Program-made: the position numbers and the translations under genes
The notes under the pieces: generated by a model
What the model was told of the DNA's origin: nothing
The model's database searches: none
Seen by the model: only the letters and a program-made list of their open reading frames with translations
Shown here: positions 37,804 through 64,000 of the stretch, piece after piece
Layout of the letters: each line of letters begins with the position of its first letter
How positions within the stretch are numbered: position 1 is the stretch's first letter
Source: Tubulanus polymorphus
Lineage: Eukaryota > Animalia > Nemertea
Length of the DNA stretch: 64,000 bases
Assembly: GCF_964204645.1 (NCBI RefSeq)
Contig: NC_134032.1
Coordinates: 14,620,275-14,684,274, forward strand
Reading direction: 5' to 3'

Positions 37804-38550
37804 TTACTTATCACTGATAGGTAAAACTTCCCATAATTCCAAGTCCACAACATATTCTCCAATTTTTCCCATTTCGTGCCATATTTTCTTCAGTTTCAAG
37901 TTTGCTTTTTTCGCTTTATCATCGAGAACTTTAAGAATGCCGTACGCGGCGGAGAAAGCCATAATAACCCTGCCGCCCGGACGTAGGTGTCCGTGGGCTC
38001 CGGTTATAAAACGCCCGATAGCCTCGTAGCCGGGGTCAGCCATAGATCTGTCCAGCATCGTTAAATCATCAGCCATTTCGATTGGCATGAAATTATACGG
38101 AACGTGCCAGAAAATCAAATCAAACTTTTCATCTTCGCGAATATTTTCGTAAACGTCGGAATATCGCACGTCTCCCGGGACGGCGTAACGCTCAAAATTC
38201 ACTTTAGTATTCTCTAAAGCTTGTTGGTTGATGTCGGTTGCCAACATGTAACTGAGCTTCGATTTATTACGTAAATAATGTACGACGCTCATGCAACCAG
38301 TACCGCATCCGATTTCTAACATTCTAGCGCCCTCTACTGTCTGTTCCGGTAAATTCAACGCCTGCTGTTCATGACCGTTCAGGAAAAAAACGTCGAGAAA
38401 ATTAACGAATTTCTGACCGCAAAATTCAAACTCGCGTCGACCTCCGTTTTCCGTCATAAATTTCTGATTATTTTCGATCAGTTCTTGACTTTCTTCAAAC
38501 ATGGCTGTCCGTTTAGCGAGTTCTTCTTGATCGAGAAAAGCATCCACCAT
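37804..38550 (-). CDS. Intronless class I SAM-dependent methyltransferase (HemK/MTase-small-like), copy A, nested in EXT1 intron 1
   Basis: 248-aa ORF; motif I MLEIGCGTG, post-I ATDIN, SDVY, motif IV variant FDLIFWHVPY, HLRPGG. AAAATGG start context; AATAAA at 37615-37620. Confidence 0.9.
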   Translation of the reverse strand: MVDAFLDQEELAKRTAMFEESQELIENNQKFMTENGGRREFEFCGQKFVNFLDVFFLNGHEQQALNLPEQTVEGARMLEIGCGTGCMSVVHYLRNKSKLSYMLATDINQQALENTKVNFERYAVPGDVRYSDVYENIREDEKFDLIFWHVPYNFMPIEMADDLTMLDRSMADPGYEAIGRFITGAHGHLRPGGRVIMAFSAAYGILKVLDDKAKKANLKLKKIWHEMGKIGEYVVDLELWEVLPISDK

Positions 38551-39908
38551 TTTGCCGAGGAATATTACTAAAGATGAGTTGAATTTAAGACACTGACGAC
38601 AGCAGATAGACAGACGTTTAAACAGCAGTTAAGACCAGACGTTTAGACAGTGGTAGCGGGTAATAATGCAACGTTTCTGGTAGTGTGATAATCCTTAGAA
38701 CAAAATTCATCCTCATGAATTTATTTTTGCTAGTAATCAGTACTGCACAGGTTGCGTGTGAGATTTGACAATATGAAGGCAATCCGATATATTCTGAACA
38801 TTTACTCATAATCAATCATGAATATATTAGAAATGTGTTAACAGGCCGAAGTGCTGATTTTGGCGAACAACAATGGCTGCCGTTCAGCCATCTTGATTCT
38901 GACGGGGCCAGTTTTTGGGCTGAAGATGTGTCTAGGGTAGATACATGTGTAACCCAAATATCAAGACATTACATTGAAGCGTCTTCAAAACTTCCTAAAA
39001 TAACTGGATTCCGTCTATGGACGGACGAACTGACGGACGGACGAAAAGTGAACAGTTATCCGAATAGTTATAAAACTTTTTAAAACCGAAATTCAACCAT
39101 ATGTGACATAAGTATACATACCACATCACATGCCCTATATTTCCCCACCCAGCATTTAGCAAAACAGAAACGGTGCAATGATTGAGTCGTTGATACTAAT
39201 GATAGTAAAGTGAGTATGACACATCTAATGAACAGGCAGCAGGCAGAAGTGTCGGCAAGTGTCTCATCGAGATTCATGGCAAGCTGTTAATATGCAAGTC
39301 ACAGGGTAAAAAACCGTGGTTACAGGGAGGGAGGGAGGGAGGGAGGCAGGGAGGCAGGCAGGGAGGGAGGGAGGGAGGCAGGCAGGCAAAGGAGACAGGC
39401 AGGGAGACAGGCAGGCAGGGAGGGAGACAGGCAAGGAGGGAGGCAGGCAGGGAATGAGGCAGGCAGGGAGGCATGGAGGGAGGGAGGCAGGCAGGCTGGG
39501 AGACAGGCAGGCAGGGAGGGAGACAGGCAAGGAGGGAGGCAGGCAGGGAATGAGGCAGGCAGGGAGGCATGGAGGGAGGGAGGCAGGCAGGGAGGCAGGC
39601 AGGAAGGGAGGCAGGCAGGGAGAGTATATATATGTACATCTCAGTGTTTTGGAATTATTTATGGTATTTCAGGATATTTCAGACAGCTATAGGCTATAAA
39701 CACACTACCAGACACAGTAAAATACACTGCATCATTCACGGCATCGTTTGTTTCAATAGATTTTTATTCACTGATGAAAAATATCTCGCTGTCTGTGTTG
39801 GTATCTGCTCGCTCTCTGCAGGTCATTTTTAGGTTGACGTTTATAAGAATTGAAGTTAAGAACAATGAATAATCATAGGTCAAGGTCGTTGATCTCAACA
39901 GTCACGAT

Positions 39909-40696
39909 CACAGGGGTTTGGCGATGGGCTTGGATTTTATTTCCGGGTTGTTGATAATCTCGCGAGAATGGCGCTAAATATGAACTGCGAATAAATTCAA
40001 AATATCACGGAAATACCTTGTGTTTATATTGTTTATTTATCCGCTATAAAGTTCTGATAAACAATTGGTCGTTAAGAATCATTATCAGACGGTCGTCACG
40101 CTTTACTATATAAAATCACAAGGGATGAAACGCCAGGCCTCCGCTGTACTTAAATTTTCAGCCAGAAAGTTGGGACAGTCACGTGACATTCTGATGACGT
40201 CATCGCATTTAAAACTTCAACACGAAAAGTTAACATATTCACAGACCGATATCAATTGTCAGATTAGGATTCATATGAAATTAATAACTAATAAAGAATA
40301 AATTATGATCAAATATATAATTCATAGAAAAAAATTGCATTTGAATGTAAGTTATTCTCAAATATTTTTCGTATCATAGTTTCCATCTTATATGCTTCAG
40401 GTTCGCGTTCAGTCAAATAAGAAGCGTTAAGTCACGTGACTGTCCCAACTTTCTGGCTGGCACAACTCTGAAGGCGTTTCATCCCTTGTTATTTTATATA
40501 GTAGCGTGACGACCGTCTGATAATGATTCTTAACGACCAATTGTATATCGAAACTTTATAGCGGATAAATAAACAATATAAACACAAGGTATTTCCGTGA
40601 TATTTTGAATTTATTCGCAGTTCATATTTAGCGCCATTCTCGCGAGATTATCAACAACTCGGAAATAAAATCCAAGCCCATCGCCAAACCCCTGTG
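39909..40696. mobile_element. 788-bp fold-back MITE, copy 2
   Basis: Near-identical to copy 1, with a different perfect 8-bp TSD GTCACGAT. Confidence 0.93.
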
Positions 40697-42976
40697 GTCA
40701 CGATGGCAGACGATTAGGTGTATGACCTTGATAAATGCTTTCAGAACCAGTAACACCCCCACTAACCACACATTCAGGGGCATATCCAGAGACCAATTTT
40801 GATGGACTTGTCAAAAGGGCACTTTGACGTCCAATAAGGCGTAGTCCTGCACTGAAATGGGGAAAAGGGCAATTTTAAAGATTTATGTCTATAATTCCCG
40901 ATGATGTATGTATCTCATGAAGTCTTCCTCCTCTCCCTCGATCAACAGTTGTAGGTTTCTGTGTACAAACATTGACTGAAGGTTCAGTACACTACGGGCA
41001 TATAGTACCGGCAGAGCACTCAGAAACTCAGACACTGGATGTACGAGCTATGGTTCACAGAAAGGAATTCACTGATTCAGTGAAAATGTTTACGAATAGT
41101 TCGCTAACTTAATTTGTATAAAGTTGCACAGTTGAAAGTTTACGTGAACTGGGCCAACGGTCTGACCTGTGAATCAATAGGAAGCAGTTCTCATCAGCGC
41201 CATGACATTTTTTTTCGAGAAAAATTACCGGATATGACCGACTGTGAGCCATCTTGAATTTCTTTACTGATTTGCGATAAAAACTTAACAAAACATTCTT
41301 TAAATAATCAGTTTGCTCGAATAGCACTTCACACCGATGAGGCTAGAACTTGTGATAACTAAAAAGGCTGTCTGACATCGCCGTATTGAGGTTTTTTTAA
41401 TGTATGCATGTCTTTCTCTCTCCCTTGTTGAATCAAAAATTAGCAACAACAACAGCAGCTTCCGTCGGTAAAAAGCCTAAGAGGAAATGAACACCACAAA
41501 TCAACTGGAAAAATGTTCAGACAATGGCCTAAATACAATATACTAGTTACGAATAAACGGCTGGGAAAATGGCAGCAGCTCGCTGGTCCCAACTCACTTA
41601 TTGTTATAATTATTATATATGTATCATAATTCCCTAATTCTAATAATAATGATAATAATAATAATTATTCATAATTATCTTAATGCCGAGGGCAGTAATC
41701 ATGAATTATGTCGCGTTATTCCAGCGCTTTCAGGCATAATCTATACACATTTTGGACGTTTAAAGAAATACACGACAAAAATTGAATTTATAGAAAATGA
41801 AGTTTCAAAACGAATTTTACGGGATGAAAGAGTTTGCGGGAGATGATACGACAAAATACCGGTATTAGGGTTCGGGGCAGCGGAGGATGGTTCGTATATA
41901 ACTAGTAAAAATGTTATTTGAGGTCTGTTTTTTTTCCCTTTTAACTTTTTTACCTCGTGAATCCAATTCAGATATCAATCTGTTATCTAAAAAAAAAAAC
42001 CAAATATTGACGGAGAAAATCGATGGAACATCTGAGAGTGTGGAGACATTTGAAACTATAAAAATCCCATGAAATATCATAGGATTCAAAGCAAGTTTTA
42101 GGTTGATTCTGGTGTATTTAACTTAACAGTTTAAAACAGAAAATGAATAAACTGTGATACTAAAACACCAGTCAAATGAGATCAGCTTTTACACTGTATA
42201 TGCCTACATATGACTGGTCAATTGTGTGCACGTACTAGTAACATAGCTCACATGTGACATGAGCATGTTACATGTAAACTCTAGATCACATGACTACTTG
42301 TGACATCATACTCCTAGCCAGCCAATCAAACCCTAACCCTAGGTCACATGACCACCAGTGACATCTATATCCTAGCCAGCCAATCAAACCCTAAACTTAG
42401 GTCACATGACCACCAGTGACATCATTATCCTAGCCAGCCAATCAAACCCTAACCCTAGGTCACATGACCACCAGTGACATCATGACTATAGCCAGCCAAT
42501 CAAACCCTAACCCTAGGTCACATGACCACCAGTGACATCATGACTATAGCCGGCCAATCAAACCCTAACCTTAGGTCACATGACTATCTGTAACATGGAA
42601 TCCTAGCCAGCCAATCATAGCTTAACCCTAGTTTGGCTGACGAACTGTGACATGTAATCAGAAGCCAAGTCAGTCCTCACTGAAATCCATTCACAATGTT
42701 CTCATGACTTTTACCATTTTTAACCACATTATAATTCAGAGAAACTAAAACAAACAAATAAAATTCATTATCATAATTGTTGATAACTTTATTTTCGTGA
42801 ATACATCACAACCTCTGAAGATGTCAAATTGTGTAATTATGATATTTAAAGAAATTAATAAAAGGAAAATTACTTACAAATATTGATATTTTAGTAACAT
42901 CGAGAATAAACCGAAAACCGAGACACAAAATTTATAATAAGCGAGATCTGGTGATTTCGATATTATCTGACAAAAG

Positions 42977-43723
42977 TTACTTTTCACTGATAGGTAAAAC
43001 TTCCCATAATTCCAAGTCCTCAACATATTCTCCAATTTTTCCCACTTCGTGCCATATTTTCTTCAGTTTCAAGTTTGCTTTTTTTGCTTTATCATCGAGA
43101 ACTTTAAGAATGCCGTACGCGGCGGAGAAAGCCATAATAACCCTGCCGCCCGGACGTAGGTGTCCGTGGGCTCCGGTTATAAAACGCCCGATCGCCTCGT
43201 AGCCGGGGTCAGCCATAGATCTGTCCAACATCGTTAAATCATCAGCCATTTCGATTGGCATGAAATTATACGGAACGTGCCAGAAAATCAAATCAAACTT
43301 TTCATCTTCGCGAATATTTTCGTAAACGTCGGAATATCGCACGTCTCCCGGGACGGCGTAACGCTCAAAATTCACTTTAGTATTCTCTAAAGCTTGTTGG
43401 TTGATGTCGGTCGCCAACACGTAACTAAGCTTCGATTTATTGCGTAAATAATGTACAACGCTCATGCAACCAGTTCCGCATCCGATTTCTAACATTCTAG
43501 CGCCCTCTACTGTCTGTTCCGGTAAATTCAACGCCTGCGGTTCATGACCGTCCAGGAAGAAAACATCGAGAAAATTAACGAATTTCTGACCGCAAAATTC
43601 AAACTCGCGTCGACCTCCGTTTTCCGTCATCGATTTCTGATTATTTTCGATCAGTTCTTGACCTTCTTCGAACATGGCTGTCCGTTTAGCGAGTTCTTCT
43701 TGATCGAGAAAAGTATCTGCCAT
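42977..43723 (-). CDS. Intronless class I SAM-dependent methyltransferase, copy B, nested in EXT1 intron 1
   Basis: 248-aa ORF with 10 aa differences from copy A and the same motifs; AATAAA at 42788-42793. Confidence 0.9.
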   Translation of the reverse strand: MADTFLDQEELAKRTAMFEEGQELIENNQKSMTENGGRREFEFCGQKFVNFLDVFFLDGHEPQALNLPEQTVEGARMLEIGCGTGCMSVVHYLRNKSKLSYVLATDINQQALENTKVNFERYAVPGDVRYSDVYENIREDEKFDLIFWHVPYNFMPIEMADDLTMLDRSMADPGYEAIGRFITGAHGHLRPGGRVIMAFSAAYGILKVLDDKAKKANLKLKKIWHEVGKIGEYVEDLELWEVLPISEK

Positions 43724-44010
43724 TTTGCCGAGGAATATTACTAAAGATGAGTTGAATTTGAGACACCGACGACAGCAGATAGACAGACGTTTAAACAGCA
43801 GTTAAGAGCAGACGTTTAGACAGTGGTAGCGGGTAATAATGCAACGTTTCTGGTAGTGTGATAATCCCTAGAACAAAATTCATCCTCATGAATTTATTTT
43901 TGCTAGTAATCAGTACTGCACAGGTTGCGTGTGAGATTTGACAATATGAAGGCAATCCGATATATTCTGAACATTGACTCATAATCAATCATGAATATAT
44001 TAGAAATGTG

Positions 44011-44262
44011 TTAACAGGCCTAAGTGCTGATTTTGGTGAACAACAATGGCTGCCAGTCGGCCATCTTGATTCTGACGGGGCCAGTTTTTGGGCTGAAGAT
44101 GTGTCTAGGGTAGATACACGTGTAACCCAAATATCAAGACATTACCTTGAAGCATCTTCAAAACTTCCCAAAATAACTGGATTCCGTCTACGGACAGACG
44201 GACGGACGGACGAAAAGTGAACGCAATAGCCCGCTGGGATTTAAGTCCCAAGTGGGCTAAAA
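44011..44262 (+). mobile_element. Helentron/HINE-like non-autonomous element (3'-truncated copy at 38838-39053)
   Basis: (GGAC)n microsatellite, 3' hairpin agcccgctggga-tttaag-tcccaagtgggct, then aaaaa. Confidence 0.55.
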
Positions 44263-45845
44263 ATTAGTACAGGTCGACATAAATTAGCGTTTATAGAACG
44301 TTTGACAAGAACGAAGTATCTTGTTTTAGTTAATTCTCTTGGACCGGAGGGAATCGTTGGAGTCATCGATAAGGACAGTCTGACTGCGGCGTTGGAAGTA
44401 CAGGGAGCTGTAGCAATAAATTACTGAATAGCCGCGGCAAAACATACTAGGACCTTTTGGCAAAAATCGGCAACTGGCCGCGGCAATCAAAACATAGCTT
44501 CCAACGCGCCTGGCGCTATTTCAAATGAGTTGACAACACAATTTTGGAAGCGTTGAAAACTGCCATAACTGACAATCTATATATCAAATATTAAACCGAG
44601 TACCAGTCATCGTGGATTATTAATCTAGTGCAGGAGTGTCAATTATTGAATAAACTAATGCAACTTGGCTATGAACAGGTGCGGGGGGGGGGGGGGCCAA
44701 ACAGAGGCGAATTAGAAAATAATTTAAATTGATTTCAACCTACATGATTTGGAGAACCCTAACTGTGTGTCTCCGATTAATTACGATATTATGTTAATTT
44801 TGTCATAAACGTTGTAATACTTTGACAATAAAGTTTATAAATACATTAAAATTTCAGCCAGTCGGCGAGCAGGAATTTCAATATGCGCTATCATTGCAAC
44901 AAAATAATTTTACATTCACATTAGCCGCATTAACACTAGATTCAGCGCTTATGAAGTACCGTACTTCACTGGTGCCGAATTCACCAAAATACGGCGCTTA
45001 CAACAGCCAGTTACGTTTACACAACGAGTCGACGATTCGGCACTTAGTAAGCCCAGTATAGTAGTCACCCGGTGTGCCGTTAGAGGGCAGTGTAACTAGT
45101 GTATTGTACTATGAGGATGTGAAAATACACGGCTAGCTAAGCGCCGAATCTGCGTTCACACTACGGAAAATACGCGTCCAGCTCAGCGCCGTACTGAGAT
45201 CGGGTTTTCTGCGCGGAATCGCATTCCGCGCTTAATAAGCCGCGTATTTCAGTACGGAACTGAATAAGCCGCAAATAGGCCTCGAATAATTTTCTATTGT
45301 GGACGCTTAGTACCATACTGAAATCCTAGTGTGGACGCAGCTTATGGCCCAGCTCAGAGATTATCAATCAACGCTCCTGAGATATCACATGGTCTCCACG
45401 GGCGCGGGCATATACCACATAATTTTTAAGCTGTCCGACAAAATTCCATACCCAATAAATCGTAAAGTTCCGGGCTAAAAAACGCGCGTAGTTTCCACGG
45501 GTTTTACTCTAGTTTATATAATTACTATCTATGTATCATAATTCCCTAATTCTAACGATAAATAATATCAATTATTCGTAATCATCCTTACGCACAGGGT
45601 AAATTGATTGACTTGTGATAATTAAAAAGGCTGCCTGACGGCTATATTGAAATGTGTTTTCACGTGTCTTTATCCTCTAAAGAAAATACTAGCATTTAGA
45701 AAATACTAGCATTTGGGTTTTGGAGAGACAGAGATGGGCCAAAGAAAATACTAGCATTTTGGAGAGAGATGGGCACCATGTAATAGTAAAATAACCACAC
45801 TCAAATGTGGTGAATGGATAATCAGATAAAAACCCATTCGTTTTA

Positions 45846-46036
45846 TAAAAATCCACCATGTACAAATTGAAAGAATTTTAAAATCGAGAATTTATCTATT
45901 CAGAAAATCTAAAATATACAATGTTGATCTCTTAGGTGAGATCGAAACGTTGTGCATTTTTTTAAATCGTATATTTTTGGATAAATAAAAAATTCTCGAT
46001 TTTAAAATCATCTTAATTTGTACGTAGTGGGTTTTT
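45846..46036. repeat. Degenerate AT-rich fold-back palindrome
   Basis: aaaaatccaccatgtacaaatt...ttttaaaatcgagaattt is mirrored by aaattctcgattttaaaa...aatttgtacgtagtgggttttt. Confidence 0.65.
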
Positions 46037-47320: not shown

Positions 47321-47466
47321 TTAAACCCGTGTACCTTCACTAAATTTCAGTTCCTAGTTCTCAGATTGATCTGAGTCATGAACTGGCAAAAAACTGGGTT
47401 CTAAAATGATGCATGATTCTTATTATTGTTATTCAAGTGGTTCATTTCAGTTCTTTCAGTTCAGAT

Positions 47467-49421: not shown

Positions 49422-49502
49422 TTAAAATATTCCGGCAGCAAATTGAGAAAACTGAGATAATAAATATGTTTTTACAGAAGAGAGAGATAATGTAGTACAT
49501 AC

Positions 49503-50521
49503 TTGTCGTATAAAGCGTTATCGTGAGGACATCTTTCATCCATCAATGTTTTCCAGCCTTTCCCGTGTTTACAAGTCGTCAACAATACGATATCCTTCCC
49601 GTTGTGAATATGATATAGCGCGTTACGAGTTTCCGAACCGATTCCCGACAAATACCGTTTACCCTTAAACGCCAAAAGGTATTTACGCGTTGACGGTATA
49701 TTGTTGGCGCGTAGGGCGCCACGTTCGCCGCCTTTCTGCGCGTGTTCCTTCGAGAAAAGCGGCGCGGCGATATCAAAACCGGCGCGGAATTTCTGCATCG
49801 ATACGGACGCCTGCGCCAAGATGGCGGCGCGCGGGTTTATACCGAGGTCGTCGTCGCGGTAATCGGGCCACGTTCCCGAGAACATGTTAAACAGAACGTG
49901 ATTTCGTCCGTCGTTCCAGAATTCGAGATTCTGTAACTTGGCGTCGAGGTGTTTGACGAAATCGTCGCTAAGGACATCGCGATCGATGGTATCTAACGAC
50001 GGCACAAAGACGCACGCGTCGGTCGGATCGCTCGTGTAATAACGCGACTCGCGTAGAGCGTTTAAAACTTTCATATACGAATCGGAAATCGGTTGACGTA
50101 TCGGATAAACGTAGACTTTAAACCCGCGCGAACATTTCGTCAAGTCGAAACACGTTTCCATGCGACAGTTTTTATAGCCGTCCGTCGACGTCGTCGTCTG
50201 TCCAGACGACGACGGACGATGAACTCGTCGTGTTCGTTTCGCCGACGCGTCCAAATTAATATCCGACGCGATGTCGTCGGCGTCGAGGTAACTCCGCGTC
50301 GCCGCGGGTAGAGATCGTTTAACAACCCGGAGGTGCGCGTCGTGAAGAGCGGTATTAACCCCGGCCGGACCGCTCTTCCAGAACGACGACGGGTCATGAG
50401 GAGATGTCTGGTGAGACGATGATGCGGATGATGATGCTGGATAAATTCCGAGAAGATAAACTAGAAGAACTACTATTAAACCTCCTGTGCACAGCAGTAT
50501 ATATCGTTTTTTGGCCTGCAT
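49503..50521 (-). CDS. EXT1: Exostosin-1 exon 1 (TM anchor, stem, GT47 domain)
   Basis: Starts MQAKKRY as vertebrate EXT1 does; CRMETCFD, FKGKRYLSGIGSETRN, TTCKHGK motifs. Phase-2 donor AA|gtatgt at 49502. Confidence 0.97.
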
Positions 50522-50639
50522 TTATGCGCGTTGATTTCATAGAGAATTCAAACTCACTTTTCCACTGTTTGAGGTACATTTAGAGGCCGATTCATCGTTT
50601 TATTCGGCGCGCTCAACTCCTCTGTACAAACTCTCTCGC

Positions 50640-53239: not shown

Positions 53240-53442
53240 TTAATTGTTAATACCGACGAGACCTTCATTGAGTAAAACTTCATCAATGCAGATATCGTCA
53301 TCAGAACTCGTATCGACGAGACTGATCAATATTTTATCATCGAGTCTCTGTCGCACGAGAGCGAGTAGGTCTTTATCTAGAGTCAACTCGGAGAATCTTC
53401 GTTCAGCCTCAGGCGACCACTTGTCGCCTAACGGTGTCACAC
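53240..53442 (-). CDS. TDRD7: TDRD7-like last coding exon
   Basis: atttcag|GVTPLGDKWSPEAERRFSELTLDKDLLALV...SLVDTSSDDDICIDEVLLNEGLVGINN*. Visible CDS totals 568 aa. Confidence 0.88.
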
Positions 53443-53502
53443 CTGAAATACACAACACAGTTTTAATCATTCTGAAATATGATTCATATCAAGTGGAAGG
53501 AC

Positions 53503-54197
53503 TGAGGAGAGTGAGGGTAGAGTGAGTATGAACTGATGAGACCAGCTCTGATGAGGGGGGTGAGGGTAGAGTGAGTATGAACTGATGAGACCAGCTCTGA
53601 TGAGGGGAGTGAGGGTAGAGTGAGTACTTAAGAGACCAGCTCTGATGAGGGGGGTGAGGGTAGAGGGAGTACGTACCGAAGAGACCAGCGAGGGGAGTGA
53701 GGGTAGAGTGAGTACTTACTGAAGAGACCAGCTCTGATGAGGGGAGTGAGGGTAGAGTGAGTACGTACCGAAGAGACCAGCGAGGGGAGTGAGGGTAGAG
53801 GGGGTACTTACCGAAGAGACCAGCTCTGATGAGGGGGGTGATGGTAGAGGGAGTACTTACCGAAGAGACCAGCTCTGATGAGGGGAGTGTGGGTAGAGGG
53901 GGTACTTACCGAAGAGACCAGCTCTGATGAGGGGAGTGAGGGTAGAGTGAGTACTTACTGAAGAGACCAGCTCTGATGAGGGTAGAGGGAGTACGTACCG
54001 AAGAGACCAGCGAAGGGAGTGAGGGTAGAGGGGGTACTTACCCAAGAGACCAGCTCTGATGAGGGGAGTGAGGGTAGAGTGAATACTTACAGAAGAGACC
54101 AGCGAGGGGAGTGAGGGTAGAGGGATTAGAACTGAAGAGATCAGCTCTGATGAGGGGAGTGAGGGTAGAGGGAGTACTTACCGAAGAGACCAGCTCT
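53503..54197. repeat. About 47-52-bp tandem repeat spanning a TDRD7 exon/intron junction
   Basis: gagggtagagggagtacttaccgaagagaccagctctgatgagggga units. Confidence 0.93.
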
Positions 54198-54299
54198 AAA
54201 TGCTTGTCGCGGAAGAAGTCGGAATGAGGGATACAATGGACGGATATCTTCAAGATTCACCAAGTTGTAATCCCCAAAATCAACGAACAAAGCTGAGGC
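54182..54299 (-). CDS. TDRD7: TDRD7-like exon (Tudor, FVDFGD)
   Basis: cacag|ASALFVDFGDYNLVNLEDIRPLYPSFRLLPRQAFRAGLF G|gtaagt; 118 nt. Confidence 0.88.
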
Positions 54300-54344
54300 C
54301 TGTGAAAAAAACAAACATCAATTCATTTATAGGCAATAAGCTAA

Positions 54345-54735
54345 CCCAGTTCACAGTTGTGTGGGTTTAATTTGACTCAGGATCCAATTCCACAGATCTG
54401 TGGTTTTAATTTGATTCAAGATCCAGTTCCACAGTTGTGTGGGTTTAATTTGACTCAGGATCCAGTTCCACAGTTGTGTGGTTTTAATTTGACTCAGGAT
54501 CCAGTTCCACAGTTGTGTGGGTTTAATTTGACTCTGAACCCAGTTCACAGTTGTGTGGGTTTAATTTGACTCAGGACCCAGTTCACAGTTGTGTGGGTTT
54601 AATTTGATTCAGGATCCAGTTCCACAGTTGTGTAGGTTTAATTTGACTCTGAATCCAGTTCCACAGTTGTGTGGGTTTAATTTGACTCTGAATCCAGTTC
54701 CACAGTAGCGTTTAATTTGACACTGAATTCCACAT
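54345..54735. repeat. About 39-bp minisatellite
   Basis: gatccagttccacagttgtgtgggtttaatttgactcag. Confidence 0.93.
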
Positions 54736-54757
54736 GTGGATCAGATATCTCACCCAC

Positions 54758-54874
54758 CTTGCTACTGGCGATTAAGACACTTTTAATCATGACTCGATAC
54801 CAGATTCCTTCAAATTGTGCTGCATATAACTGGCTCCTTGGCTCGAGTTCATGAGGCATATCGGTGTATATACA
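54758..54874 (-). CDS. TDRD7: TDRD7-like exon (Tudor, WYRV)
   Basis: tttctag|CIYTDMPHELEPRSQLYAAQFEGIWYRVMIKSVLIASSK|gtgggt; 117 nt. Confidence 0.85.
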
Positions 54875-55216
54875 CTAGAAAACAAACACAAAGATAACAA
54901 TTATAAATTCACACCAAACCATTCACTTAAATAAACAGTTGAAAGCAGTTCTTCACATGTTTTTCAAATGCGATTCATGACAACAAACTATCAACGATAA
55001 AGATGATTTTCAAGAAAATTTCCTAGGCCAAGCTGCACTACGGCAAGCAACTTACTTTTAAAACGAATTTACCAAAAATTTCCAAGATTAGGGGAAATTT
55101 TTTGGTAAAAAATACCCAAATGTTTCCTTTGATATTGATATTTGATATTTCCTTTGATATTCTCAGATTTTTCGCGATATCTCGAAACTAAGGGAACCAA
55201 CGTTATGATATCTCAC

Positions 55217-55291
55217 CTGTGGAGAAGTGTAGAAATCTTTAATTTCTTGCATCAATAAAATCAGTGCATTGAGGTTCTCGAACAATACGCA
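55217..55291 (-). CDS. TDRD7: TDRD7-like exon
   Basis: tttttag|CVLFENLNALILLMQEIKDFYTSPQ|gtgaga; 75 nt. Confidence 0.85.
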
Positions 55292-55494
55292 CTAAAAAGA
55301 AAAAGGAAAAAAAAAAGAATTTTAATTCTTCGATATAACTTGAATAGAATCTGAAGTAGTAGTTGAACTAATTCATTATTCAGGATTCTAGTTCCTGGGT
55401 TCTTGGGTCCAATTTTACTGTGGGGTTAAAACGTTTCAAATTTACTAATTCTAAGTTTACTAAGGTCAAATTTAACTCGAGAACAATGAAATGG

Positions 55495-56097
55495 GATCCA
55501 GAACTGTGGAACTGAATTCTGAGCTGTCAAACCGGAACTGTGGAACTGGACCCAGAACTGCGGAACTGGACCCAGAACTGTGGAACTGGACCCAGAACTG
55601 TGGAACTGGACCCAGAACTGCGGAACTGGATCCAGAACTGTGGTACTGGACCCAGAACTGTGGAACTGGACCCAGAACTGCGGAACTAGACCCAGAACTG
55701 TGGAACTGGACCCAGAACTGCGGAACTGGACCCAGAACTGCGGAACTAGACCCAGAACTGCGGAACTAGACCCAGAACTGTGGAACTGGACCCAAAACTG
55801 TGGAACTGGACCCAGAACTGTGGAACTGGACCCAGAACTGCGGAACTGGACCCAGAACTGCGGAACTAGACCCAGAACTGCGGAACTAGACCCAGAACTG
55901 TGGAACTGGACCCAAAACTGTGGAACTGGACCCAGAACTGTGGTACTGGACCCAGAACTGTAGTACTGGACCCAGAACTGTGGAACTGGACCCAGAACTG
56001 TGGTACTAGATCCAGAACAGTGGAACTGGACCCAGAACTGTGGAACTGGACCCAAAACTGTGGAACTGGACCCAGAACTGCGGAAATGGACCCTGAA
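55495..56097. repeat. 20-bp minisatellite (reverse of 5090 family)
   Basis: cccagaactgtggaactgga. Confidence 0.96.
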
Positions 56098-56129
56098 CCA
56101 AATTCTGATAAAACACGATTTGAACTTAC

Positions 56130-56398
56130 GGTAAAGTTTCCCGGGTCACATGACCACATCACATGAACCTCCACAAACTCATCCTCGGGTAAATCGATAG
56201 AGTCAGGTAGAGACATTTCACCGGAGCAGATCCGTTCTCTGGAGCGAGAGGCAGCCGGAGTGGAGCATACGCTGCTTGTCGGTGTCCGTTCTCTGGAGTG
56301 AGAGGCAGCCGGAGTTGAACCTAAACTGCTAGTCGGTGTCCTTCGTTCAAAAACCTGACGAGCAGGCGTAGTTTCAGCTGAACTAATAGGTGGCGACA
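56130..56398 (-). CDS. TDRD7: TDRD7-like exon (S/T-rich linker and start of last extended Tudor)
   Basis: ttttcag|..SPPISSAETT...LPEDEFVEVHVMWSCDPGNFT|gtaagt; 269 nt. Confidence 0.85.
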
Positions 56399-56482
56399 CT
56401 GAAAATTTAAACGATGATATTACACGTTAGGTTGAGGTTTTTTCAAACGATGTTTATCAACGGGGTTCAGACTTCTGCCTAC

Positions 56483-56592
56483 CAACGGTTGCTAAACGAT
56501 TATCATTATCGTCCAGTTCCACTTTACTCAAAGCTTCAGCGACTAGTTCAGCATCAACACCAGCAGCGACCTCTTCATCAGACACATCATCA
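56483..56592 (-). CDS. TDRD7: TDRD7-like exon (acidic linker)
   Basis: ttgtag|T DDVSDEEVAAGVDAELVAEALSKVELDDNDNRLATV G|gtaggc. Needed to reconcile the phase-2 and phase-1 neighbours. Confidence 0.72.
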
Positions 56593-56974
56593 CTACAATA
56601 TCAGAATAGTGTCGATATATCTATCTGTCTCTTGAGGGAGCGACTCAGTAAGAGAAATTAGATAGAAAGTCAGAGTGAGGGGAGGGAGTGAAGGGAGGGA
56701 GTGAGGGAAGGGAGTGAGGGGAGGGAGGGAGATGAGGGGTAGGGAGGGATAGGAAAGAAGAGAGGAGAGAAGAGAGGATGGAGAGATAGGGAAAGGAGAG
56801 AAGAGGGTGGGAGAGGAGGGAGGGAGAGATAGGGTGAGGAGAGAGAGGGAGAGATAGGTAAAGGAAAGAAGAGAGGAGATGGGATGGAGATATAGGGAAA
56901 AGAAAGAGATTAGAGGGAGGGAGAGATAGGGAAAGGAGAGGAGAGAGGAGAGAAGAGAGGGATCAAGAAAGGAG

Positions 56975-58016
56975 GAGTAAAGGAAAGAAGAGAGGAGATT
57001 GATTTTAGAAGGGGATCAGTGTGCCGCGAGAGAGGAAAGGGAGAGATCGGTAAAGGAAAGAAGAGAGGAGATCGATTTTAGAAGGGGATCAGTGTACCGC
57101 GAGAGAGGAGAGGGAGAGATAGGTAAAGGAAAGAAGAGAGGAGATTGATTTTAGAAGGGGATCAGTGTGCCGCGAGAGAGGAGAGGGAGAGATAGGTAAA
57201 GGAAAGAAGAGAGGAGATTGATTTTAGAAGGGGATCAGTGTGCCGCGAGAGAGGAGAGGGAGAGATAGGTAAAGGGAAGAAGAGAGATCGGTTTTAGAAG
57301 GGGATCGGTGTGCCGCGAGAGAGGAGAGATAGGTAAAGGAAAGAAGAGAGGAGATCGGTTTTAGAATGGGATCAGTGTGCCGCGAGAGAGGAGAGATAGG
57401 TAAAGGGAAGAAGAGAGGAGATCGGTTTTAGAAGGGGATCAGTGTGCAGCGAGAGAGGAGAGGGAGAGATAGGTAAAGGGAAGAAGAGAGGAGATCGGTT
57501 TTAGAAGGGGATCAGTGTGCAGCGAGAGAGGAGAGGGAGAGATAGGTAAAGGGAAGAAGAGAGGAGATTGATTTTAGAAGGGGATCAGTGTGCAGCGAGA
57601 GAGGAGAGATAGGTAAAGGAAAGAAGAGAGGAGATTGATTTTAGAAGGGGATCAGTGTGCCGCGAGAGAGGAGAGGGAGAGATAGGTAAAGGGAAGAAGA
57701 GAGGAGATTGATTTTAGAAGGGGATCAGTGTGCAGCGAGAGAGGAGAGATAGGTAAAGGAAAGAAGAGAGGAGATTGATTTTAGAAGGGGATCAGTGTGC
57801 CGCGAGAGAGGAGAGGGAGAGATAGGTAAAGGAAAGAAGAGAGGAGATCGGTTTTAGAAGGGGATCAGTGTGCAGCGAGAGAGGAGAGGGAGAGATAGGT
57901 AAAGGAAAGAAGAGAGGAGATCGGTTTTAGAAGGGGATCAGTGTGCAGCGAGAGAGGAGAGGGAGAGATAGGTAAAGGGAAGAAGAGAGGAGATTGATTT
58001 TAGAAGGGGATCAGTA
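56975..58016. repeat. About 65-72-bp purine-rich minisatellite
   Basis: gattttagaaggggatcagtgtgccgcgagagaggagagggagagataggtaaaggaaagaagagaggag. Confidence 0.93.
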
Positions 58017-58021
58017 CTTAC

Positions 58022-58143
58022 TACACGAATAGATCGTTATCGTCGAGTAACGTCTGCCCGACGGATATATAATCATTATCTGCTTCATTCAGAATGAAGA
58101 ATGAGACTTCGGTCGGACTGGTGTCAGTTGCTTTGCTGGCTAC
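58022..58143 (-). CDS. TDRD7: TDRD7-like exon
   Basis: (ta)n tag|VASKATDTSPTEVSFFILNEADNDYISVGQTLLDDNDLFV TA|gtaagt; phase 2. Confidence 0.8.
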
Positions 58144-58404
58144 CTATATATATATATATATATATATAAACACAAATCAGAAATCAGACAAGCAATGAAT
58201 TTGACATAGTACTAAAAAACTAAAAATTGTAAAAATTGAAAGTTGAACGCTTTACTGGCTACCTATATAAACACAAATCAGAAATCAGACAAGCAATGAA
58301 TTTGACATTCTACTACAAACTAAAAAATCAAGTTGAACCGGATCAGGAGTGGCTACAGCAGCCCACCGTTTGAGTATCAACACACAGTGATTGAATGATT
58401 TTAC

Positions 58405-58515
58405 CTTGATCGGAATTTCTTCGTCTGTTTGTATGAGTTCTTTCAGTCGCGTTACGGCTTTCGACGTCCACACTCCGTCTGCCGGTGGAACGCCGTACAT
58501 TACACACTCTAGAGC
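58405..58515 (-). CDS. TDRD7: TDRD7-like exon
   Basis: ttacag|ALECVMYGVPPADGVWTSKAVTRLKELIQTDEEIPIK|gtaaaa; 111 nt. Confidence 0.88.
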
Positions 58516-58550
58516 CTGTAACAAACGCAGCAGACGAACATTTACAGTAA

Positions 58551-58718
58551 GGGGTCATTCATTTATTACGTACGCATTAGGAGAAGGGGGTAGGGGTCAG
58601 TGCAATTGCGTACTGTAATGATTAATGTATATGAAAAAATGGCCGATTTTGCTTACAGGGGGGGGAGGGGGGGTTGAAAAATTCAAATTTTATGCGTACG
58701 TAATAAATGAATGATCCC
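58551..58718. mobile_element. PIF/Harbinger-like MITE
   Basis: TAA|ggggtcattcatttattacgtacgcat...atgcgtacgtaataaatgaatgatccc|TAA. Confidence 0.85.
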
Positions 58719-58827
58719 TAATTGAGCGAACGACTAAGTTATAGGACATAGCGTCCTCTAAAACCCGAGTTGATTCGTGACCTGATTCCATACAGCCGGT
58801 AAATACAATGCAAGATTTAAATCAATA

Positions 58828-59338
58828 CAGGGTTCCTACAGATCAGTCATTCCAGAATTCAAGGACTTTTCAAAGAGTTTTCAAGGAGAATATTTCAAAG
58901 TTCGAGGAGTGTATGTATCAGTTTCATATCCCAATCAAAGTAAACTCCTCCTAAATCGGTACGATTTAATTCGGTAGATCACGATTGATAGAACACTATA
59001 TCCGTGTTGACGCGATGTAGAGAGAATCCCACAATTATAATAAAAAATTAGGAAGATAATTCTTATTCCTGAAGATGACTATTAGGATATAGTCGAAACG
59101 TTGAAATAAACTACTATCTCGAAGTTTCATTTTCGGACTTTTTATTATCATTGTGGGATACTCTCTACAATTCGGTGGAATCTTGTGAATATATAAGCTA
59201 GCTCTAGAGCCAAAAAATTCCAAATTTCTCAAAATTCAAAAGGAGTTTTCAAGGACTTTTGGGTATTTTGCTCAAATTCAAGGATATTCATGGACCTTGA
59301 AAAATACTTTTGGTTTTGAAGGAGTCGTAGGGACCCTG
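58828..59338. mobile_element. TA-flanked MITE (Tc1/mariner-like ends)
   Basis: TA|cagggttcctac...gtagggaccctg|TA. Related degenerate pieces near 2340-2390, 34780 and 61420-61840. Confidence 0.65.
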
Positions 59339-59457
59339 TAATAAATGACCGTGTTATAATTTTGTTCCGACTGGCAGACGTGACATCACGAGCAAGGTGT
59401 TTATAGGCAGACGTTAGTCAAGAGGAATCTAAATCGAGTAATTTTAAGATACAGTAC

Positions 59458-59559
59458 CTGGTAGGGTAACGTCATGTGGGAGCCGCAGTTATCGGCAACA
59501 CGTAGCTCGGTGAAATCGACCACTTCAGAATTACCGTAATCAACAAAATACACTTCGGC
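59458..59559 (-). CDS. TDRD7: TDRD7-like exon (Tudor core, FVDYGN)
   Basis: tttcag|AEVYFVDYGNSEVVDFTELRVADNCGSHMTLPYQ|gtactg; 102 nt. Confidence 0.9.
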
Positions 59560-59624
59560 CTGAAACATAATAAACATTCCAGTTATATAAAATTCAAATT
59601 TCAGATGATTTAAAACCAAGCATA

Positions 59625-61086
59625 GGGTTGACTTGTAACAGGCTCCAGAGGTGGGGAGGGGGTGGGGCAGTGTAGGTTGACATGTATAGATCAGTTCTAA
59701 CAGGTTCGAGATGGGGGGAGGGGGTGGGGCAGTGTAGGTTGACATGTATAGATCAGTTCTAACAGGTTCCAGGCGGGGGAGGGGGTGGGGCAGTGTAGGT
59801 TGACATGTATAGATCAGTTGTAACAGGCTCCAGAGGTGGGGAGGGGTGGGGCAGTGTAGGTTGACATGTATAGATCAGTTGTAACAGGCTCCAGAGGTGG
59901 GGAGGGGTGGGGCAGTGTAGGTTGACATGTATAGATCAGTTCTAACAGGCTCCAGAGGTGGGGAGGGGGTGGGGCAGTGTAGGTTGACATGTATAGATCA
60001 GTTCTAACAGGTTCCAGGCGGGGGAGGGGGTGGGGCAATGTAGGTTGACATGTATAGATCAGTTGTAACAGGCTCCAGAGGTGGGGAGGGGGTGGGGCAG
60101 TGTAGGTTGACATGTATAGATCAGTTGTAACAGGCTCCAGAGGTGGGGAGGGGGTGGGGCAGTGTAGGTTGACATGTATAGATCAGTTGTAACAGGCTCC
60201 AGAGGTGGGGAGGGGGTGGGGCAGTGTAGGTTGACATGTATAGATCAGTTGTAACAGGCTCCAGAGGTGGGGAGGGGGTGGGGCAGTGTAGGTTGACATG
60301 TATAGATCAGTTGTAACAGGCTCCAGATGGGGGGAGGGGGTGGGGCAGTGTAGGTTGACATGTATAGATCAGTTCTAACAGGTTCGAGATGGGGGGAGGG
60401 GGTGGGGCAGTGTAGGTTGACATGTATAGATCAGTTGTAACAGGTTCCAGGCGGGGGAGGGGGTGGGGCAGTGTAGGTTGACATGTATAGATCAGTTGTA
60501 ACAGGCTCCAGAGGTGGGGAGGGGTGGGGCAGTGTAGGTTGACATGTATAGATCAGTTGTAACAGGCTCCAGAGGTGGGGAGGGGTGGGGCAGTGTAGGT
60601 TGACATGTATAGATCAGTTCTAACAGGCTCCAGAGGTGGGGAGGGGGTGGGGCAGTGTAGGTTGACATGTATAGATCAGTTGTAACAGGTTCCAGAGGTG
60701 GGGAGGGGATGGGGCAGTGTAGGTTGACATGTATAGATCAGTTCTAACAGGTTCCAGATGGGGGGAGGGGTGGGGCAGTGTAGGTTGACATGTATAGATC
60801 AGTTCTAACAGGTTCCAGATGGGGGGAGGGGGTGGGGCAGTGTAGGTTGACATGTATTGATCAGTTGTAACAGGTTCCAGGTGGGGGGAGGGGGTGGGGC
60901 AGTGTAGGTTGACATGTATAGATCAGTTCTAACAGGTTCCAGATGGGGGGAGGGGGTGGGGCAGTGTAGGTTGACATGTAAAGATCAGTTCTAACAGGTT
61001 CCAGATGGAGGGAGGGGTGGGGCAGTGTAGGTTGACATGTAAAGATCAGTTCTAACAGGTTCCAGATGGGGGGAGGGGGTGGGGCA
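59625..61086. repeat. About 62-bp G-run minisatellite x about 23
   Basis: caggctccagaggtggggagggggtggggcagtgtaggttgacatgtatagatcagttgtaa. Confidence 0.96.
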
Positions 61087-61164
61087 CTAGGCGATCCTAG
61101 CATATTGATTTTATGGAATTCAGGCTTAACAAATTAAAATTATTAATTATCATTATTCACGAAC

Positions 61165-61284
61165 CGTTCGATCGGTGAAGATCTGTTTGATTTCAGCTCG
61201 GTACCACGAGTTATCAACGGAATAACGAGCCACGACGACGAGACCGGGTCGCGGAGATTTAACGTACTCATCAGCGCGAGATGG
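61165..61284 (-). CDS. TDRD7: TDRD7-like exon (Tudor core, WYRA)
   Basis: PSRADEYVKSPRPGLVVVARYSVDNSWYRAEIKQIFTDRT|gttcgt; 120 nt. Confidence 0.88.
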
Positions 61285-62026
61285 CTACAATAACAGAACA
61301 AAAACACAAATTCAATTTAGTCATAGTCTCTGAGGTCTGTATAATAGAATACTTGTTTTATTGATTCATTTTCATAATCTATCGAAAAGCTCTTTCGTAC
61401 ATCTTTTAACTCAAGCAAGGTGCCTACGGATCGGTCATTCTTGGATATAAGGAGTTTACAAGCAGGGCCCCTACAGATCGGTCATTCCTGGATATAAGGA
61501 GTCCCTATAGATCGGTCATTCCTGGATATAAGGAGTCCCTACGGATCGGTCATTCCTGGATATAAGCTGCCAATCTATATTCTTTCAACAACTAAACTCA
61601 GTTTCTAATTCGTTTAACCACCTAATCGGTTAAAAAAAATCCTAATCCCAACCGTAGCGATTCAGGCAATTTAGGCATTATCTACCGAACAACTAAAAAC
61701 ATTTCTAATTGCTTATTTCTCAAAATTGAATTGAGTTTTAAAGGAATTTTGGGAATTTTGCTCTAATTAAAGGAGTTTCAAGCACCTTTTTAAAGGTTTT
61801 TCGAGTTTTTTAAGGAATCAAGGAATCATAGGGACCCAGTCAAGTAATCTTTCCGAATAACATATTAAAATCGATAATCCTAGGCAATCGATTCCCAAGG
61901 CAGACGCAAACAGCTTATATACTGCTCAAACTTCAATTTATCTGTGGCAGCCATCTTCAGAAAATTAAAAGAAAACAGACAGTATTAAAAAATTCTGCGA
62001 AGATCACGGTTAGCTTCAATACGCAC

Positions 62027-62158
62027 CTTCGAGAAATGTTTTTCGATATCCTGCATCAACAGATCGAGTCGTTTGATACCCGGGTGATTGGCTATTTGAA
62101 CATGAATTAAACCGTTATCAGCGACGTGTGTGACGACAACCTCTAGAATGCCACCCTC
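62027..62158 (-). CDS. TDRD7: TDRD7-like exon
   Basis: tttctag|EGGILEVVVTHVADNGLIHVQIANHPGIKRLDLLMQDIEKHFSK|gtgcgt; 132 nt. Confidence 0.85.
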
Positions 62159-62705
62159 CTAGAAATACACAAAATATTAACAATTTATCCTAGAAATACA
62201 TGGAATATGAATACTTAAACCTGGAAATTTTTGACTAATCACTTCGCTTTCAATATCATAAACTCGAATAGCAATGTTTTAAAGTTTCGCAAATATTTTT
62301 CTAGATTTTTCTAATTGCGTGAGTTTTCGAGGAAAGGATGAACCCCGATACAAATTGACCATCCTCCCTCGGCAGGGATTAGAACCAGATAGAATCGTTA
62401 GAGTTAGCAATGGCATGACCCCCTGCCAGAGTAGACCCGGTGCGCAGGGACATGCGCAGCTTTGCTGCACGAAAACTTGCTGCACCAATCAGATCGCTCG
62501 TTGTATAATCGCTTAGGTAAATTTCACGGTGGAACTATAAGTGGGAAAACCCAGGCTAAAATAAAACAGGATTTCTGATTGGTTAATAATGACATCATCT
62601 AAGCTGCGCATGTGGTCTAGTGTGGCAGGGTTTCGTACCGCGGCAATCTCAATGTCATCAGGTTCGAATCCCAGCCGGGGGAGGTAAGAAATTGACGGGA
62701 AATAC

Positions 62706-62933
62706 CTCCGGTAAAACTGGACTAAACTCTTCGTCGTTGACCGTGTTAGTGATTAGATCGTTGACATTGACGTCTGCTGCAGTAGACGTATCGTACAGTA
62801 ACACCGACAGACGATCCGACCGATCTAAAACCTCAGCTATGAATGTTTTATTCAGCAGTATCTGAATAAGGGTCTCGATGACGCTGTCTTTCTCGTTGAA
62901 ATCCTCGAGTCCGGCCAGCGAGCACGTCACCGC
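62706..62933 (-). CDS. TDRD7: TDRD7/Tapas-like Tudor protein, first visible exon (gene begins beyond right edge)
   Basis: ttccag|AVTCSLAGLEDF...KTFIAEVLDRSDRLSVLLYDTSTAADVNVN...PE|gtattt. Resembles my recollection of vertebrate TDRD7 'CKLAGLE...VLYDTSGEDDININ'. Confidence 0.8.
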
Positions 62934-63589
62934 CTGGAATAATAAACGAAAAACATTTTAATCAACTCAGTTTAAAACAGTAACTGATTAAACATAACCA
63001 ACTTAACTCTGTTTTGAGGGTAACTGTTCTCCAGAGATATCATTCTGTTTTGAGGATTACACGTTCACTACCACCCTGATAATACAGTGCTGCCCCCTAG
63101 AGTTCTACTTCGAATTTACTCCTATGTTGCCAATACAGCTATATCGTAGTGCACTATCGTTCAAATATTGACCAATCAGCACCGATTGAATTTTTTCTGT
63201 AGCAGCTAATTTTGGTTGAATAAACTAATTTCAAACGTGAGTATAAAAATTTGTTTGATTACTACATATTATATGAAGATTAACATATTTGAGGAGGACA
63301 CCCTCGGGCCCTAAGAGCTGTATCTGAAGGGGGATGCCCTCGGTTGCAACTGGAAGAACAATTGTGTCCGCTGAAACATGAATGCGCTAGGGAATAGACA
63401 GGTTTCTGCTACCGCGTCGCAACAAGTTGCTTGAGGTTGTAAGGCAGACCAACGCTAAATTCCAACAAACAAACAAACAAACAATACAAAATTGAAATCA
63501 ATGAGAGCAAACTCAAATTTATTACCATATACTACAATATATGAGCGAATGATGAAGGAAATCAGAAAGAGAAAGAAAATCCTGGGTCG

Positions 63590-63786
63590 TTGCGCGTATT
63601 GTTAGTTACCAGTATTTCATTATGATTGACAAGTGCTGCCATTTTTCAAGAGGATAATTACTAATTGCATCAATACACCGCAGTGCGATGTTTTTCAAGA
63701 GGATAATTACTAATTACATCAATACACCGCAGTGCGATGTACTAGCAAAATCCATCACTGATTTATACACCGCACTGAAAGGTTTA
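63590..63786. mobile_element. Partial piggyBac-like MITE
   Basis: Same internal sequence (gtgctgccatttttcaag, caatacaccgcagtgcg) and gcactgaaagg terminus. Confidence 0.7.
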
Positions 63787-63839
63787 AGTAAAGTTATTCA
63801 GCACTGATTTATACACCGCGCTGAAAGGTTCAAGTAAAG

Positions 63840-64000
63840 TTATTCAGCACTGATTTGTACGACTTGCCACAATTCAATATCTTCCTCTAAACTGCCTCCG
63901 TAGGCGACCGTTTCATGCCAAATTTTCTCCAATTTCAAATTCGCTTTTTTCGCTATTTCGGCGAGAATTTCCATGAATCCTAAACCGCTACCGAAACAGA
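63840..64000 (-). CDS. 3' end of a third, divergent paralog of the same methyltransferase family (truncated by window edge)
   Basis: Manual translation from 63998: CFGSGLGFMEILAEIAKKANLKLEKIWHETVAYGGSLEEDIELWQVVQISAE*. Aligns to the copy A C-terminus AFSAAYGILKVLDDKAKKANLKLKKIWHE...DLELWEVLPISDK* (about 24/52 identical). Confidence 0.85.
   Translation of the reverse strand, partial: CFGSGLGFMEILAEIAKKANLKLEKIWHETVAYGGSLEEDIELWQVVQISAE

Follow-up and report, generated by a model that had tools for sequence, protein, structure and literature searches.

Results

Intact methyltransferase genes in EXT1 intron 1

The DNA analysed here, called the window below, is a 64,000-nucleotide (nt) stretch of the Tubulanus polymorphus genome (contig NC_134032.1, abbreviated C8, positions 14,620,275-14,684,274), which we extended by the following 50 kb such that an extended coordinate x is C8 position 14,620,274 + x. 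It contains members of a family of small, single-exon genes predicted to encode S-adenosylmethionine (SAM)-dependent methyltransferases, and these genes sit inside introns of two neighbouring hosts, EXT1 and a Tudor-domain gene of the TDRD7 type. The original prediction, made from the letters of the window, had placed two intact 248-amino-acid (aa) open reading frames (ORFs), here copies A and B, in EXT1 intron 1 and the C terminus of a third paralog in an intron of TDRD7, with all three on the strand of the host. These placements were borne out. A and B appear as intact frames in the ORF list, match the Pfam MTS model (PF05175; 45.9 and 46.7 bits against a cut-off of 23) as well as several generic methyltransferase models, and fall between collinear EXT1 exons; the rightward extension completed the third ORF, intact at 248 aa, and brought in upstream exons of its host; and all eight copies that we now count in the two introns, like both hosts, are on the minus strand (Table 1).

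The assignment of the first host to EXT1 also stands. As in other EXT1/Tout-velu genes, its GT47 exons are followed by GT64 exons, and the homologues of exon 1 carry the names EXT1, exostosin-1 or Tout-velu. A sea-star EXT1 protein (P0214) mapped collinearly onto exons 1-5 by tblastn, with residues 80-306, 305-331, 329-382, 372-424 and 411-495 aligning to 50176-49499, 27772-27692, 23112-22939, 22900-22739 and 21845-21582, respectively, and with exons 1 and 2 on either side of A and B. The best 120 protein matches listed included no fragment of a Tubulanus EXT1, which is weak evidence only.

The ORFs of A and B are 96% identical, with a nonsynonymous divergence (dN) of 0.018 and a synonymous divergence (dS) of 0.088 (dN/dS 0.20). 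An AATAAA about 185 nt downstream of each had been singled out in the original prediction, and the hexamer is present at 184 nt in both; it is, however, a single duplicated site, because both copies belong to one duplicated 1.78-kb unit, and it is one of 15 AATAAA (next to 7 ATTAAA) counted on the sense strand of EXT1 intron 1.

Several repeats surround the two units. Directly downstream of A and B is a 58-bp tandem repeat with a palindromic TCACATGA-like core and a CCAAT box (37283-37486 and 42277-42631); it recurs elsewhere in EXT1 intron 1 (28657-29195) and between array members of the second host (extended 65054-65339). A very high-copy dispersed repeat, with a contig depth of 10^4-10^5 compared with ~26 for unique DNA, lies within the duplicated unit, 300-500 nt 5' of the ATG of A and B (38850-39050 and 44020-44222). 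A (CAGG)n-type satellite is found on both sides of unit A (36859-36989 and 39323-39619), producing lengthy but spurious open frames on either strand (36852-37208, 39274-39699), and this satellite appears to be the site at which unit A was inserted.

A six-gene array divides a Tudor domain of the second host

The third paralog is the 3'-most member of an array of six intact tandem copies, which have a period of ~2 kb and fill ~11 of the 13.7 kb of a single intron. None of the full-length C8 copies in the two introns contains a stop codon (8/8 stop-free). The third copy is flanked on either side by Tudor exons of the minus strand: below it there are Tudor matches at 54183-54296, 59404-59745 and 61180-61263 of the window, and above it at C8:14,696,926-14,697,183 and 14,702,540-14,702,901.

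The intron can be placed within one Tudor domain. An open frame at extended 76589-76930 covers positions 30-114 of the 121-position Tudor profile and ends in ...LSYQ, followed by gtaaat; the exon that it represents ends at extended 76655, outside the window. The frame at 62661-62957 opens with AVTCSLAGL... directly after ttattccag, and the remainder of the Tudor domain, plus an SN-like tail, is encoded by the exon that starts at 62933. For comparison, an uninterrupted Tudor exon of the same gene reads FPVQAIKCSL at profile positions 114-121. Because the profile match stops at 114 of 121 and the next frame supplies the end motif, we read these two exons as halves of one Tudor domain. Simple splice-site scoring gave 76655 to 62933 as the best junction, in phase 0 and with both sites near consensus, and a scan of open frames found no further candidate exon between these two positions. 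Judged from the DNA, then, whole guest genes are enclosed between host exons in both cases, A and B between EXT1 exons 1 and 2 and the array between the Tudor halves. Several introns of this host (55426-56145, 59800-61100 and extended 75654-76544 and 80262-82149) are occupied by tandem repeats, and the long open frames there are not exons.

Small exons continue upstream on the same strand to a start methionine at extended ~92160. One of them (extended 91385-91507) matched the OST-HTH/LOTUS profile as a partial domain with E=1.2e-4 and 22.3 bits against a cut-off of 23.8, falling just below the cut-off because the exon covers only part of the domain; LOTUS on C8 was missed by the whole-genome Pfam scan and emerged only in scans of individual small upstream exons. 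Judged by the domain starts and ends seen in open frames, the gene has at least four extended Tudor domains. A LOTUS domain together with multiple extended Tudor domains is the architecture of TDRD7/Tapas (table in PMC12147562). The second host appears to share this combination, with only one LOTUS exon scoring; by domain architecture, we would class it as a LOTUS plus multi-Tudor gene of the TDRD7 type, in agreement with the name given in the original prediction.

The host was searched exon by exon. The nearest Atlas clusters for its Tudor exons are labelled 'Tudor domain-containing protein' and nothing more specific, PDB searches with single exons returned generic Tudor matches only, and a homologue search with one exon returned no candidate. 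Its exon sequences may also resemble human TDRD7. Other LOTUS loci occur at C4:9,717,240-9,721,425, C7:7,891,269-7,900,753 and C7:15,439,878-15,444,413, two of them with Tudor matches nearby. Such loci could represent TDRD5, MARF1 or a second TDRD7-like gene, which bears on how the host is named.

The family is spread over nine contigs and conserved by selection

A six-frame search of the genome gave 34 matches, 25 of them full-length without stops and distributed over nine contigs (C2, C3, C4, C5, C6, C7, C8, C10 and C11), with four copies clustered on C6 and a pair each on C3 and C7. Intact single-ORF members number at least 23 and occupy ~13 sites, ~10 of which hold intact members apart from the two hosts. 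The coding sequences of all family members are uninterrupted, and the RefSeq products of three others, on contigs C10 and C6 (P0001, P0033 and P0183), correspond exactly to the single ORF. Pairwise dN/dS had a median of 0.24 (range 0.08-0.72), and we take the family to be under purifying selection, with dN/dS estimated at ~0.2-0.4.

For a tree, 23 of the 25 full-length matches were taken as intact ORFs and combined with the best matches that a profile search retrieved among 1.84 billion representatives, plus those from 185,579 prokaryotic genomes. All 23 Tubulanus ORFs fell into one clade, with a Shimodaira-Hasegawa-like approximate likelihood ratio test (SH-aLRT) support of 98. Within it, A and B grouped with array copy 5 and a C10 copy (SH-aLRT 99), and the other array copies were intermixed with copies from C3, C5 and C11 and with distant C8 copies. 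The grouping of A and B with array copy 5 implies that they were copied from the neighbourhood of the array. Short-range duplication, as proposed in the original prediction, is supported by the A/B/copy 5 clade; the expansion is nonetheless not purely local, the family being genome-wide.

The SAM-binding core is nearly uniform among the C8 copies

Compared with the array copies, A is 94-96% identical at the nucleotide level within a 219-nt segment encoding the SAM-binding core (codons 75-147; 38110-38328 in copy A) and 62-69% identical elsewhere in the ORF. Across the whole set of C8 copies, core identity is 94-98%, and a C8 copy ~285 kb away reaches 97.7%, whereas the C10 copy, a near relative of A elsewhere in the ORF, is only 85% identical in the core. 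Synonymous difference within the C8 cluster is correspondingly uneven, at 0.09-0.13 in the core versus 0.37-0.74 outside it; for A against the array copies, the value outside the core is 0.5-0.7. This pattern fits gene conversion that would be confined to the SAM-binding core among the C8 copies. If conversion is limited in this way, the copies in the EXT1 intron and those in the TDRD7-like intron still interact, and any age estimated from the dS of a whole gene is a composite. Where conversion has not acted, in the N- and C-terminal parts, dN/dS is 0.2-0.5, with synonymous sites near saturation.

The predicted protein is an MTS-type methyltransferase with an altered motif IV

Several lines of evidence bear on what these genes encode. 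The SAM motif EIGCG(T/N)GC (GxGxG) shows little or no variation among 21 copies. An AlphaFold model (predicted local distance difference test 69.6, predicted template modelling score 0.72) had methyltransferases as its best Foldseek matches, with probability 1.0 and E-values down to 4e-12, among them Asc-Orf2 (9l4q), RsmC (2pjd) and other Rossmann-fold enzymes; the best PDB profile matches were a release-factor methyltransferase, an apramycin N-methyltransferase, RsmC and the carbamoyl N-methyltransferase Asc-Orf2. The family thus shares with the MTS N-methyltransferases (RsmC, Asc-Orf2, PrmC/HemK) the MTS domain, the GxGxG motif and a predicted Rossmann-type fold.

The C8 copies differ from these enzymes in motif IV, where His or Cys takes the place of Asn. 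A and B read FWHVPY (38095-38112 in A), which does not conform to (N/D)-P-P-(Y/F/W), and in the array copies FWH, FCH or FWC precedes (T/V)-P-(Y/C). Across the clade of C8, C3, C5 and C11 copies, the motif takes the forms FWH..Y/C/N, FCH..Y or FWC..C. Distant paralogues and outgroups, by comparison, keep N-x-P-F/W: the C2, C4, C6, C7 and C10 copies retain N-x-P-F/Y, and the outgroups and divergent Tubulanus copies read D-x-I-F-W-N-x-P-F/W. With the catalytic Asn replaced by His or Cys, the chemistry or the substrate has probably changed. The C8-clade protein would then be a SAM-binding enzyme derived from N-methyltransferases and carrying an altered catalytic residue, as its predicted fold and motifs suggest.

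PrmC/HemK was considered as an identity and rejected: the PrmC N-terminal domain that distinguishes that enzyme (PF17827) gave no Pfam match in A or B, PrmC matches span only ~31-37% of the query, and closer relatives form a separate family of ~230 aa with the motif FWN.PF. We therefore read the RefSeq name 'release factor glutamine methyltransferase-like', given what the sequences suggest, as a default label.

Relatives outside Tubulanus

The named relatives are bacterial or archaeal, at 29-41% identity, and include candidate-phyla-radiation bacteria, Bdellovibrionota, Streptomyces and other actinomycetes, Xenorhabdus/Photorhabdus and DPANN archaea; no named animal homologue outside Tubulanus was present among the searched proteins. 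The immediate sister group of the Tubulanus clade consists of seven proteins (SH-aLRT 98, ~32-48% identity). Three of their contigs were inspected and are gene-poor and low in guanine plus cytosine (GC), with a copia-type reverse transcriptase fragment on one and a P-element-like transposase on another. By these features the sister contigs look eukaryotic, and the family may be present in other eukaryotes. The closest non-Tubulanus relatives are single uninterrupted ORFs as well (L027, L028, L029 and L110; SRR29645014, SRR5025426, ERZ25069859 and ERZ26858995); a further accession among the sister sequences is ERZ25878582.

Discussion

We favor the possibility, and consider it probable, that the copies described here are real, selectively maintained single-exon genes belonging to a lineage-expanded family of small class-I SAM-dependent MTS methyltransferases, and that local duplication brought them into the EXT1 intron. 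In this scenario, an old tandem array of six genes with a period of ~2 kb sits in one ordinary phase-0 intron of the TDRD7-type gene, and a member was later copied ~29 kb downstream, in non-inverted orientation, into intron 1 of the neighbouring EXT1, where a second duplication would have produced A and B (dS ~0.09). Gene conversion among the C8 copies would homogenise the 219-nt core. Each copy would be a short transcription unit in its own right, with its own promoter and 3' end, and host pre-mRNAs would read through the copies as through the other intronic AATAAA hexamers. The encoded proteins would bind SAM.

Our data do not support the suggestion, made in the original prediction, that the same-strand layout is an oddity. 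Since both hosts and the array share a strand, direct duplication would by itself produce sense-nested copies, and orientation would have been inherited rather than selected. Tandem descent and duplication reduce the eight same-strand copies to one or two independent events, which carry no statistical weight. There is ample precedent for the arrangement: among human nested genes, ~63% are antisense and ~37% sense to the host, and ~41% are single-exon (PMC3192792). Sense nesting is a minority state and no anomaly. Like nested genes of other animals (human, and the single-exon guests of Drosophila), which include a sizeable sense minority, the Tubulanus copies are whole guest genes within host introns, many such guests being single-exon; they differ in that the guests are a six-gene tandem array with a two-gene offshoot in the neighbouring gene, all of them paralogues and still exchanging sequence.

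A number of observations weigh against the scenario that we favor. The only evidence that the C8 copies may be expressed, namely purifying selection, is indirect. A search of sequencing runs found three matching runs of one study, none of them on record as RNA. Compared over 37500-43499 as Logan contigs, one run (X1) had an even, DNA-like depth of ~26x that crossed the boundaries between ORFs and flanks, and the other two (X2 and X3) were patchy and uneven in depth, as RNA or low-coverage DNA would be; the contigs of all three contained no joints inside the methyltransferase units in this interval. Upstream alignments of 250 nt showed no promoter motif conserved across copies, the shared block measuring only ~35-55 nt and being limited to the subclade of A/B, copy 5 and the C10 copy. 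No poly(A) hexamer position is conserved across the family, other members having hexamers at unrelated distances or none within 600 nt. With 15 AATAAA in the same intron and none shared across the family, the hexamer 184 nt downstream of A and B is no more than chance gives and cannot be taken to mark a poly(A) site. The annotated protein collection contains other members of the same assembly but not the exact A, B and array ORFs, which is weak evidence. It seems that the NCBI pipeline did not call the C8 copies, and their absence may be due to their nesting in sense orientation no less than to a lack of RNA support. Finally, the loss of the motif IV Asn from the C8 copies could mean that catalysis was lost.

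A more elaborate reading, which we regard as unlikely, starts from the same genes and makes the TDRD7-intron array and its EXT1 offshoot a prokaryote-derived set of N-methyltransferases that combines host-coupled expression, a catalytic switch from Asn to His or Cys and a core kept uniform by conversion. Host coupling, a hypothesis that the original prediction had also raised, could in this reading take the form, for example, of germline expression through host transcription, or of internal polyadenylation traded against full-length TDRD7 or EXT1. Prokaryote-derived families have expanded in invertebrates, an example being the bacterial-type DNA methyltransferase of bdelloid rotifers, and the Tubulanus family resembles such cases in its intronless ORFs, its mainly prokaryotic relatives, its location on animal chromosomes and its purifying selection. 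It differs from them in that its nearest relatives are on eukaryote-like contigs. The family is of prokaryotic type, but any transfer that took place need not have been a recent one from a bacterium to Tubulanus; it could be of greater age or have involved other eukaryotes as intermediates. As to the catalytic switch, the C10 copy nearest to A keeps the Asn, so the change in motif IV was repeated or reverted.

It is also possible, if doubtful, that expression depends on the hosts altogether, the copies lacking promoters of their own and serving as alternative terminal exons or sites of intronic polyadenylation in competition with EXT1 and TDRD7. The shared strand of copies and hosts, the missing conserved promoter motif and the lack of separate NCBI gene calls on C8 would all agree with this, as would a pyrimidine-rich stretch ending in TAG that precedes the start codon by 23 nt in A and B as well as in array copy 5 and the C10 copy, and that could be a splice acceptor. 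This candidate acceptor is not kept in the other array copies, however, and six consecutive genes cannot all be terminal exons of one host. Furthermore, members elsewhere are annotated as stand-alone single-ORF genes, and an A-rich context 5' of the ATG is retained in most copies, as independent initiation predicts.

Somewhat less probable is that the copies are silent passengers, either unexpressed or carried as cargo of a mobile element, and owe their intactness to recent duplication and conversion. Conversion of the core is active, the position once held by the motif IV Asn varies between H and C, one N-terminal fragment lies in the array, and unit A sits between (CAGG)n blocks and beside the very high-copy repeat. 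What such passengers would not explain is a dN/dS of 0.2-0.5 in the parts of the gene that conversion does not reach, together with eight out of eight stop-free C8 copies, a combination unlike that of old pseudogenes. With regard to mobile cargo, the ends of the A and B units showed no terminal inverted repeats, target duplications or transposase, there was no tRNA-like element, and no Rfam family was found in the window.

We give little credence to the array being intergenic between two separate Tudor genes, with only the EXT1 pair nested. The genome does have several multi-Tudor genes, but the exon to extended 76655 stops in mid-Tudor and the one at 62933 completes the domain, through near-consensus phase-0 sites that are the best-scoring pairing and have no candidate exon between them. 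An artefact of bacterial contamination or misassembly, suggested by the bacterial and archaeal deeper relatives, is scarcely credible given that the ORFs are flanked by host exons within a contig of 16.7 Mb, have a host-like GC content (43-44%, compared with 41% for the window), are crossed at single-copy depth by the DNA-like run and belong to a set of 25 diverged full-length matches on nine contigs.

If the copies are transcribed, this locus would provide a compact natural case of a spliced host that tolerates a row of sense, polyadenylated guests in one intron, the TDRD7-like host being a germline gene with a Tudor domain split by the intron that holds the array. The family is likewise a clear example of the expansion of a prokaryote-type enzyme in an animal, of partial gene conversion restricted to a core and of a changed catalytic motif. 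What the analysis contributes is a well-documented structural annotation that is apparently missing from the public gene set; it does not introduce a new principle.

Coordinates and a further element in the window

Table 1. Host exons and introns, methyltransferase copies and associated features. Positions are window coordinates unless marked ext. (extended coordinates); a slash marks a splice junction.
Feature	Position	Strand	Evidence or remark
Copy A, intact single-exon ORF, 248 aa	37804-38550	minus	ORF list; Pfam MTS PF05175, E=6e-12
Copy B, intact single-exon ORF, 248 aa	42977-43723	minus	ORF list; Pfam MTS PF05175
Duplicated unit around A (ORF + ~0.5 kb per side)	37278-39053	minus	blastn of the region against itself
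Partner unit around B	42451-44222	minus	96.1% identical to A unit over 1.78 kb
AATAAA 184 nt past stop of A	37615-37620	minus	same hexamer after B at 42788-42793
EXT1 exon 1, coding from ATG	49503-50521	minus	Pfam Exostosin_GT47, E=2e-30; within 349-aa ORF 49472-50521
EXT1 intron 1, 21.7 kb, containing A and B	27771-49502	minus	donor AA/gtatgt at 49503/49502; acceptor cag/G at 27771/27770
EXT1 exon 2, 75 nt	27696-27770	minus	pyrimidine-rich cag acceptor; collinear tblastn
EXT1 exon 3	22975-23107	minus	begins at 23107
Further EXT1 exons (near these positions)	22739-22900, 21582-21845, 21032-21271, 20464-20652, 19603-19911	minus	
Third copy, last 53 codons + stop	63840-63998	minus	part in window; intact 248-aa ORF runs on to ext. 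64586
Array copies, intact	ext. 63840-64586, 66028-66762, 67929-68699	minus	
Array copies, intact	ext. 70107-70841, 71979-72728, 74012-74755	minus	
N-terminal fragment, 78 codons	ext. 65758-65994		inside array; decayed member
TDRD7-like phase-0 intron, 13,721 bp	62934 to ext. 76654 (window part 62934-64000)	minus	holds six-copy array
TDRD7-like exon, C-terminal half of extended Tudor domain 2	62706-62933	minus	acceptor ttccag/GCG; donor GAG/gtattt
TDRD7-like 3' exons, Tudor domains 3 and 4	53243-62158	minus	Tudor matches, open frames, splice-site scoring; boundaries approximate
TDRD7-like exons, approximate	62027-62158, ~61196-61268, 59458-~59560, 58405-58515	minus	
TDRD7-like exons, approximate	56130-~56354, 54758-54874, 54182-54299, 53243-53442	minus	last ends at stop
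Decayed C7 copy	L023:5258-6181 (C7)		frame enters (TA)n tract; no start codon; diverged C-terminus

Apart from the repeats described above, a 788-bp element occurs twice in the window (39906-40699 and 14106-14893). The two occurrences are 98% identical and have internal inverted repeats of ~280 bp, and the element is probably a foldback transposon or one resembling a miniature inverted-repeat transposable element (MITE).

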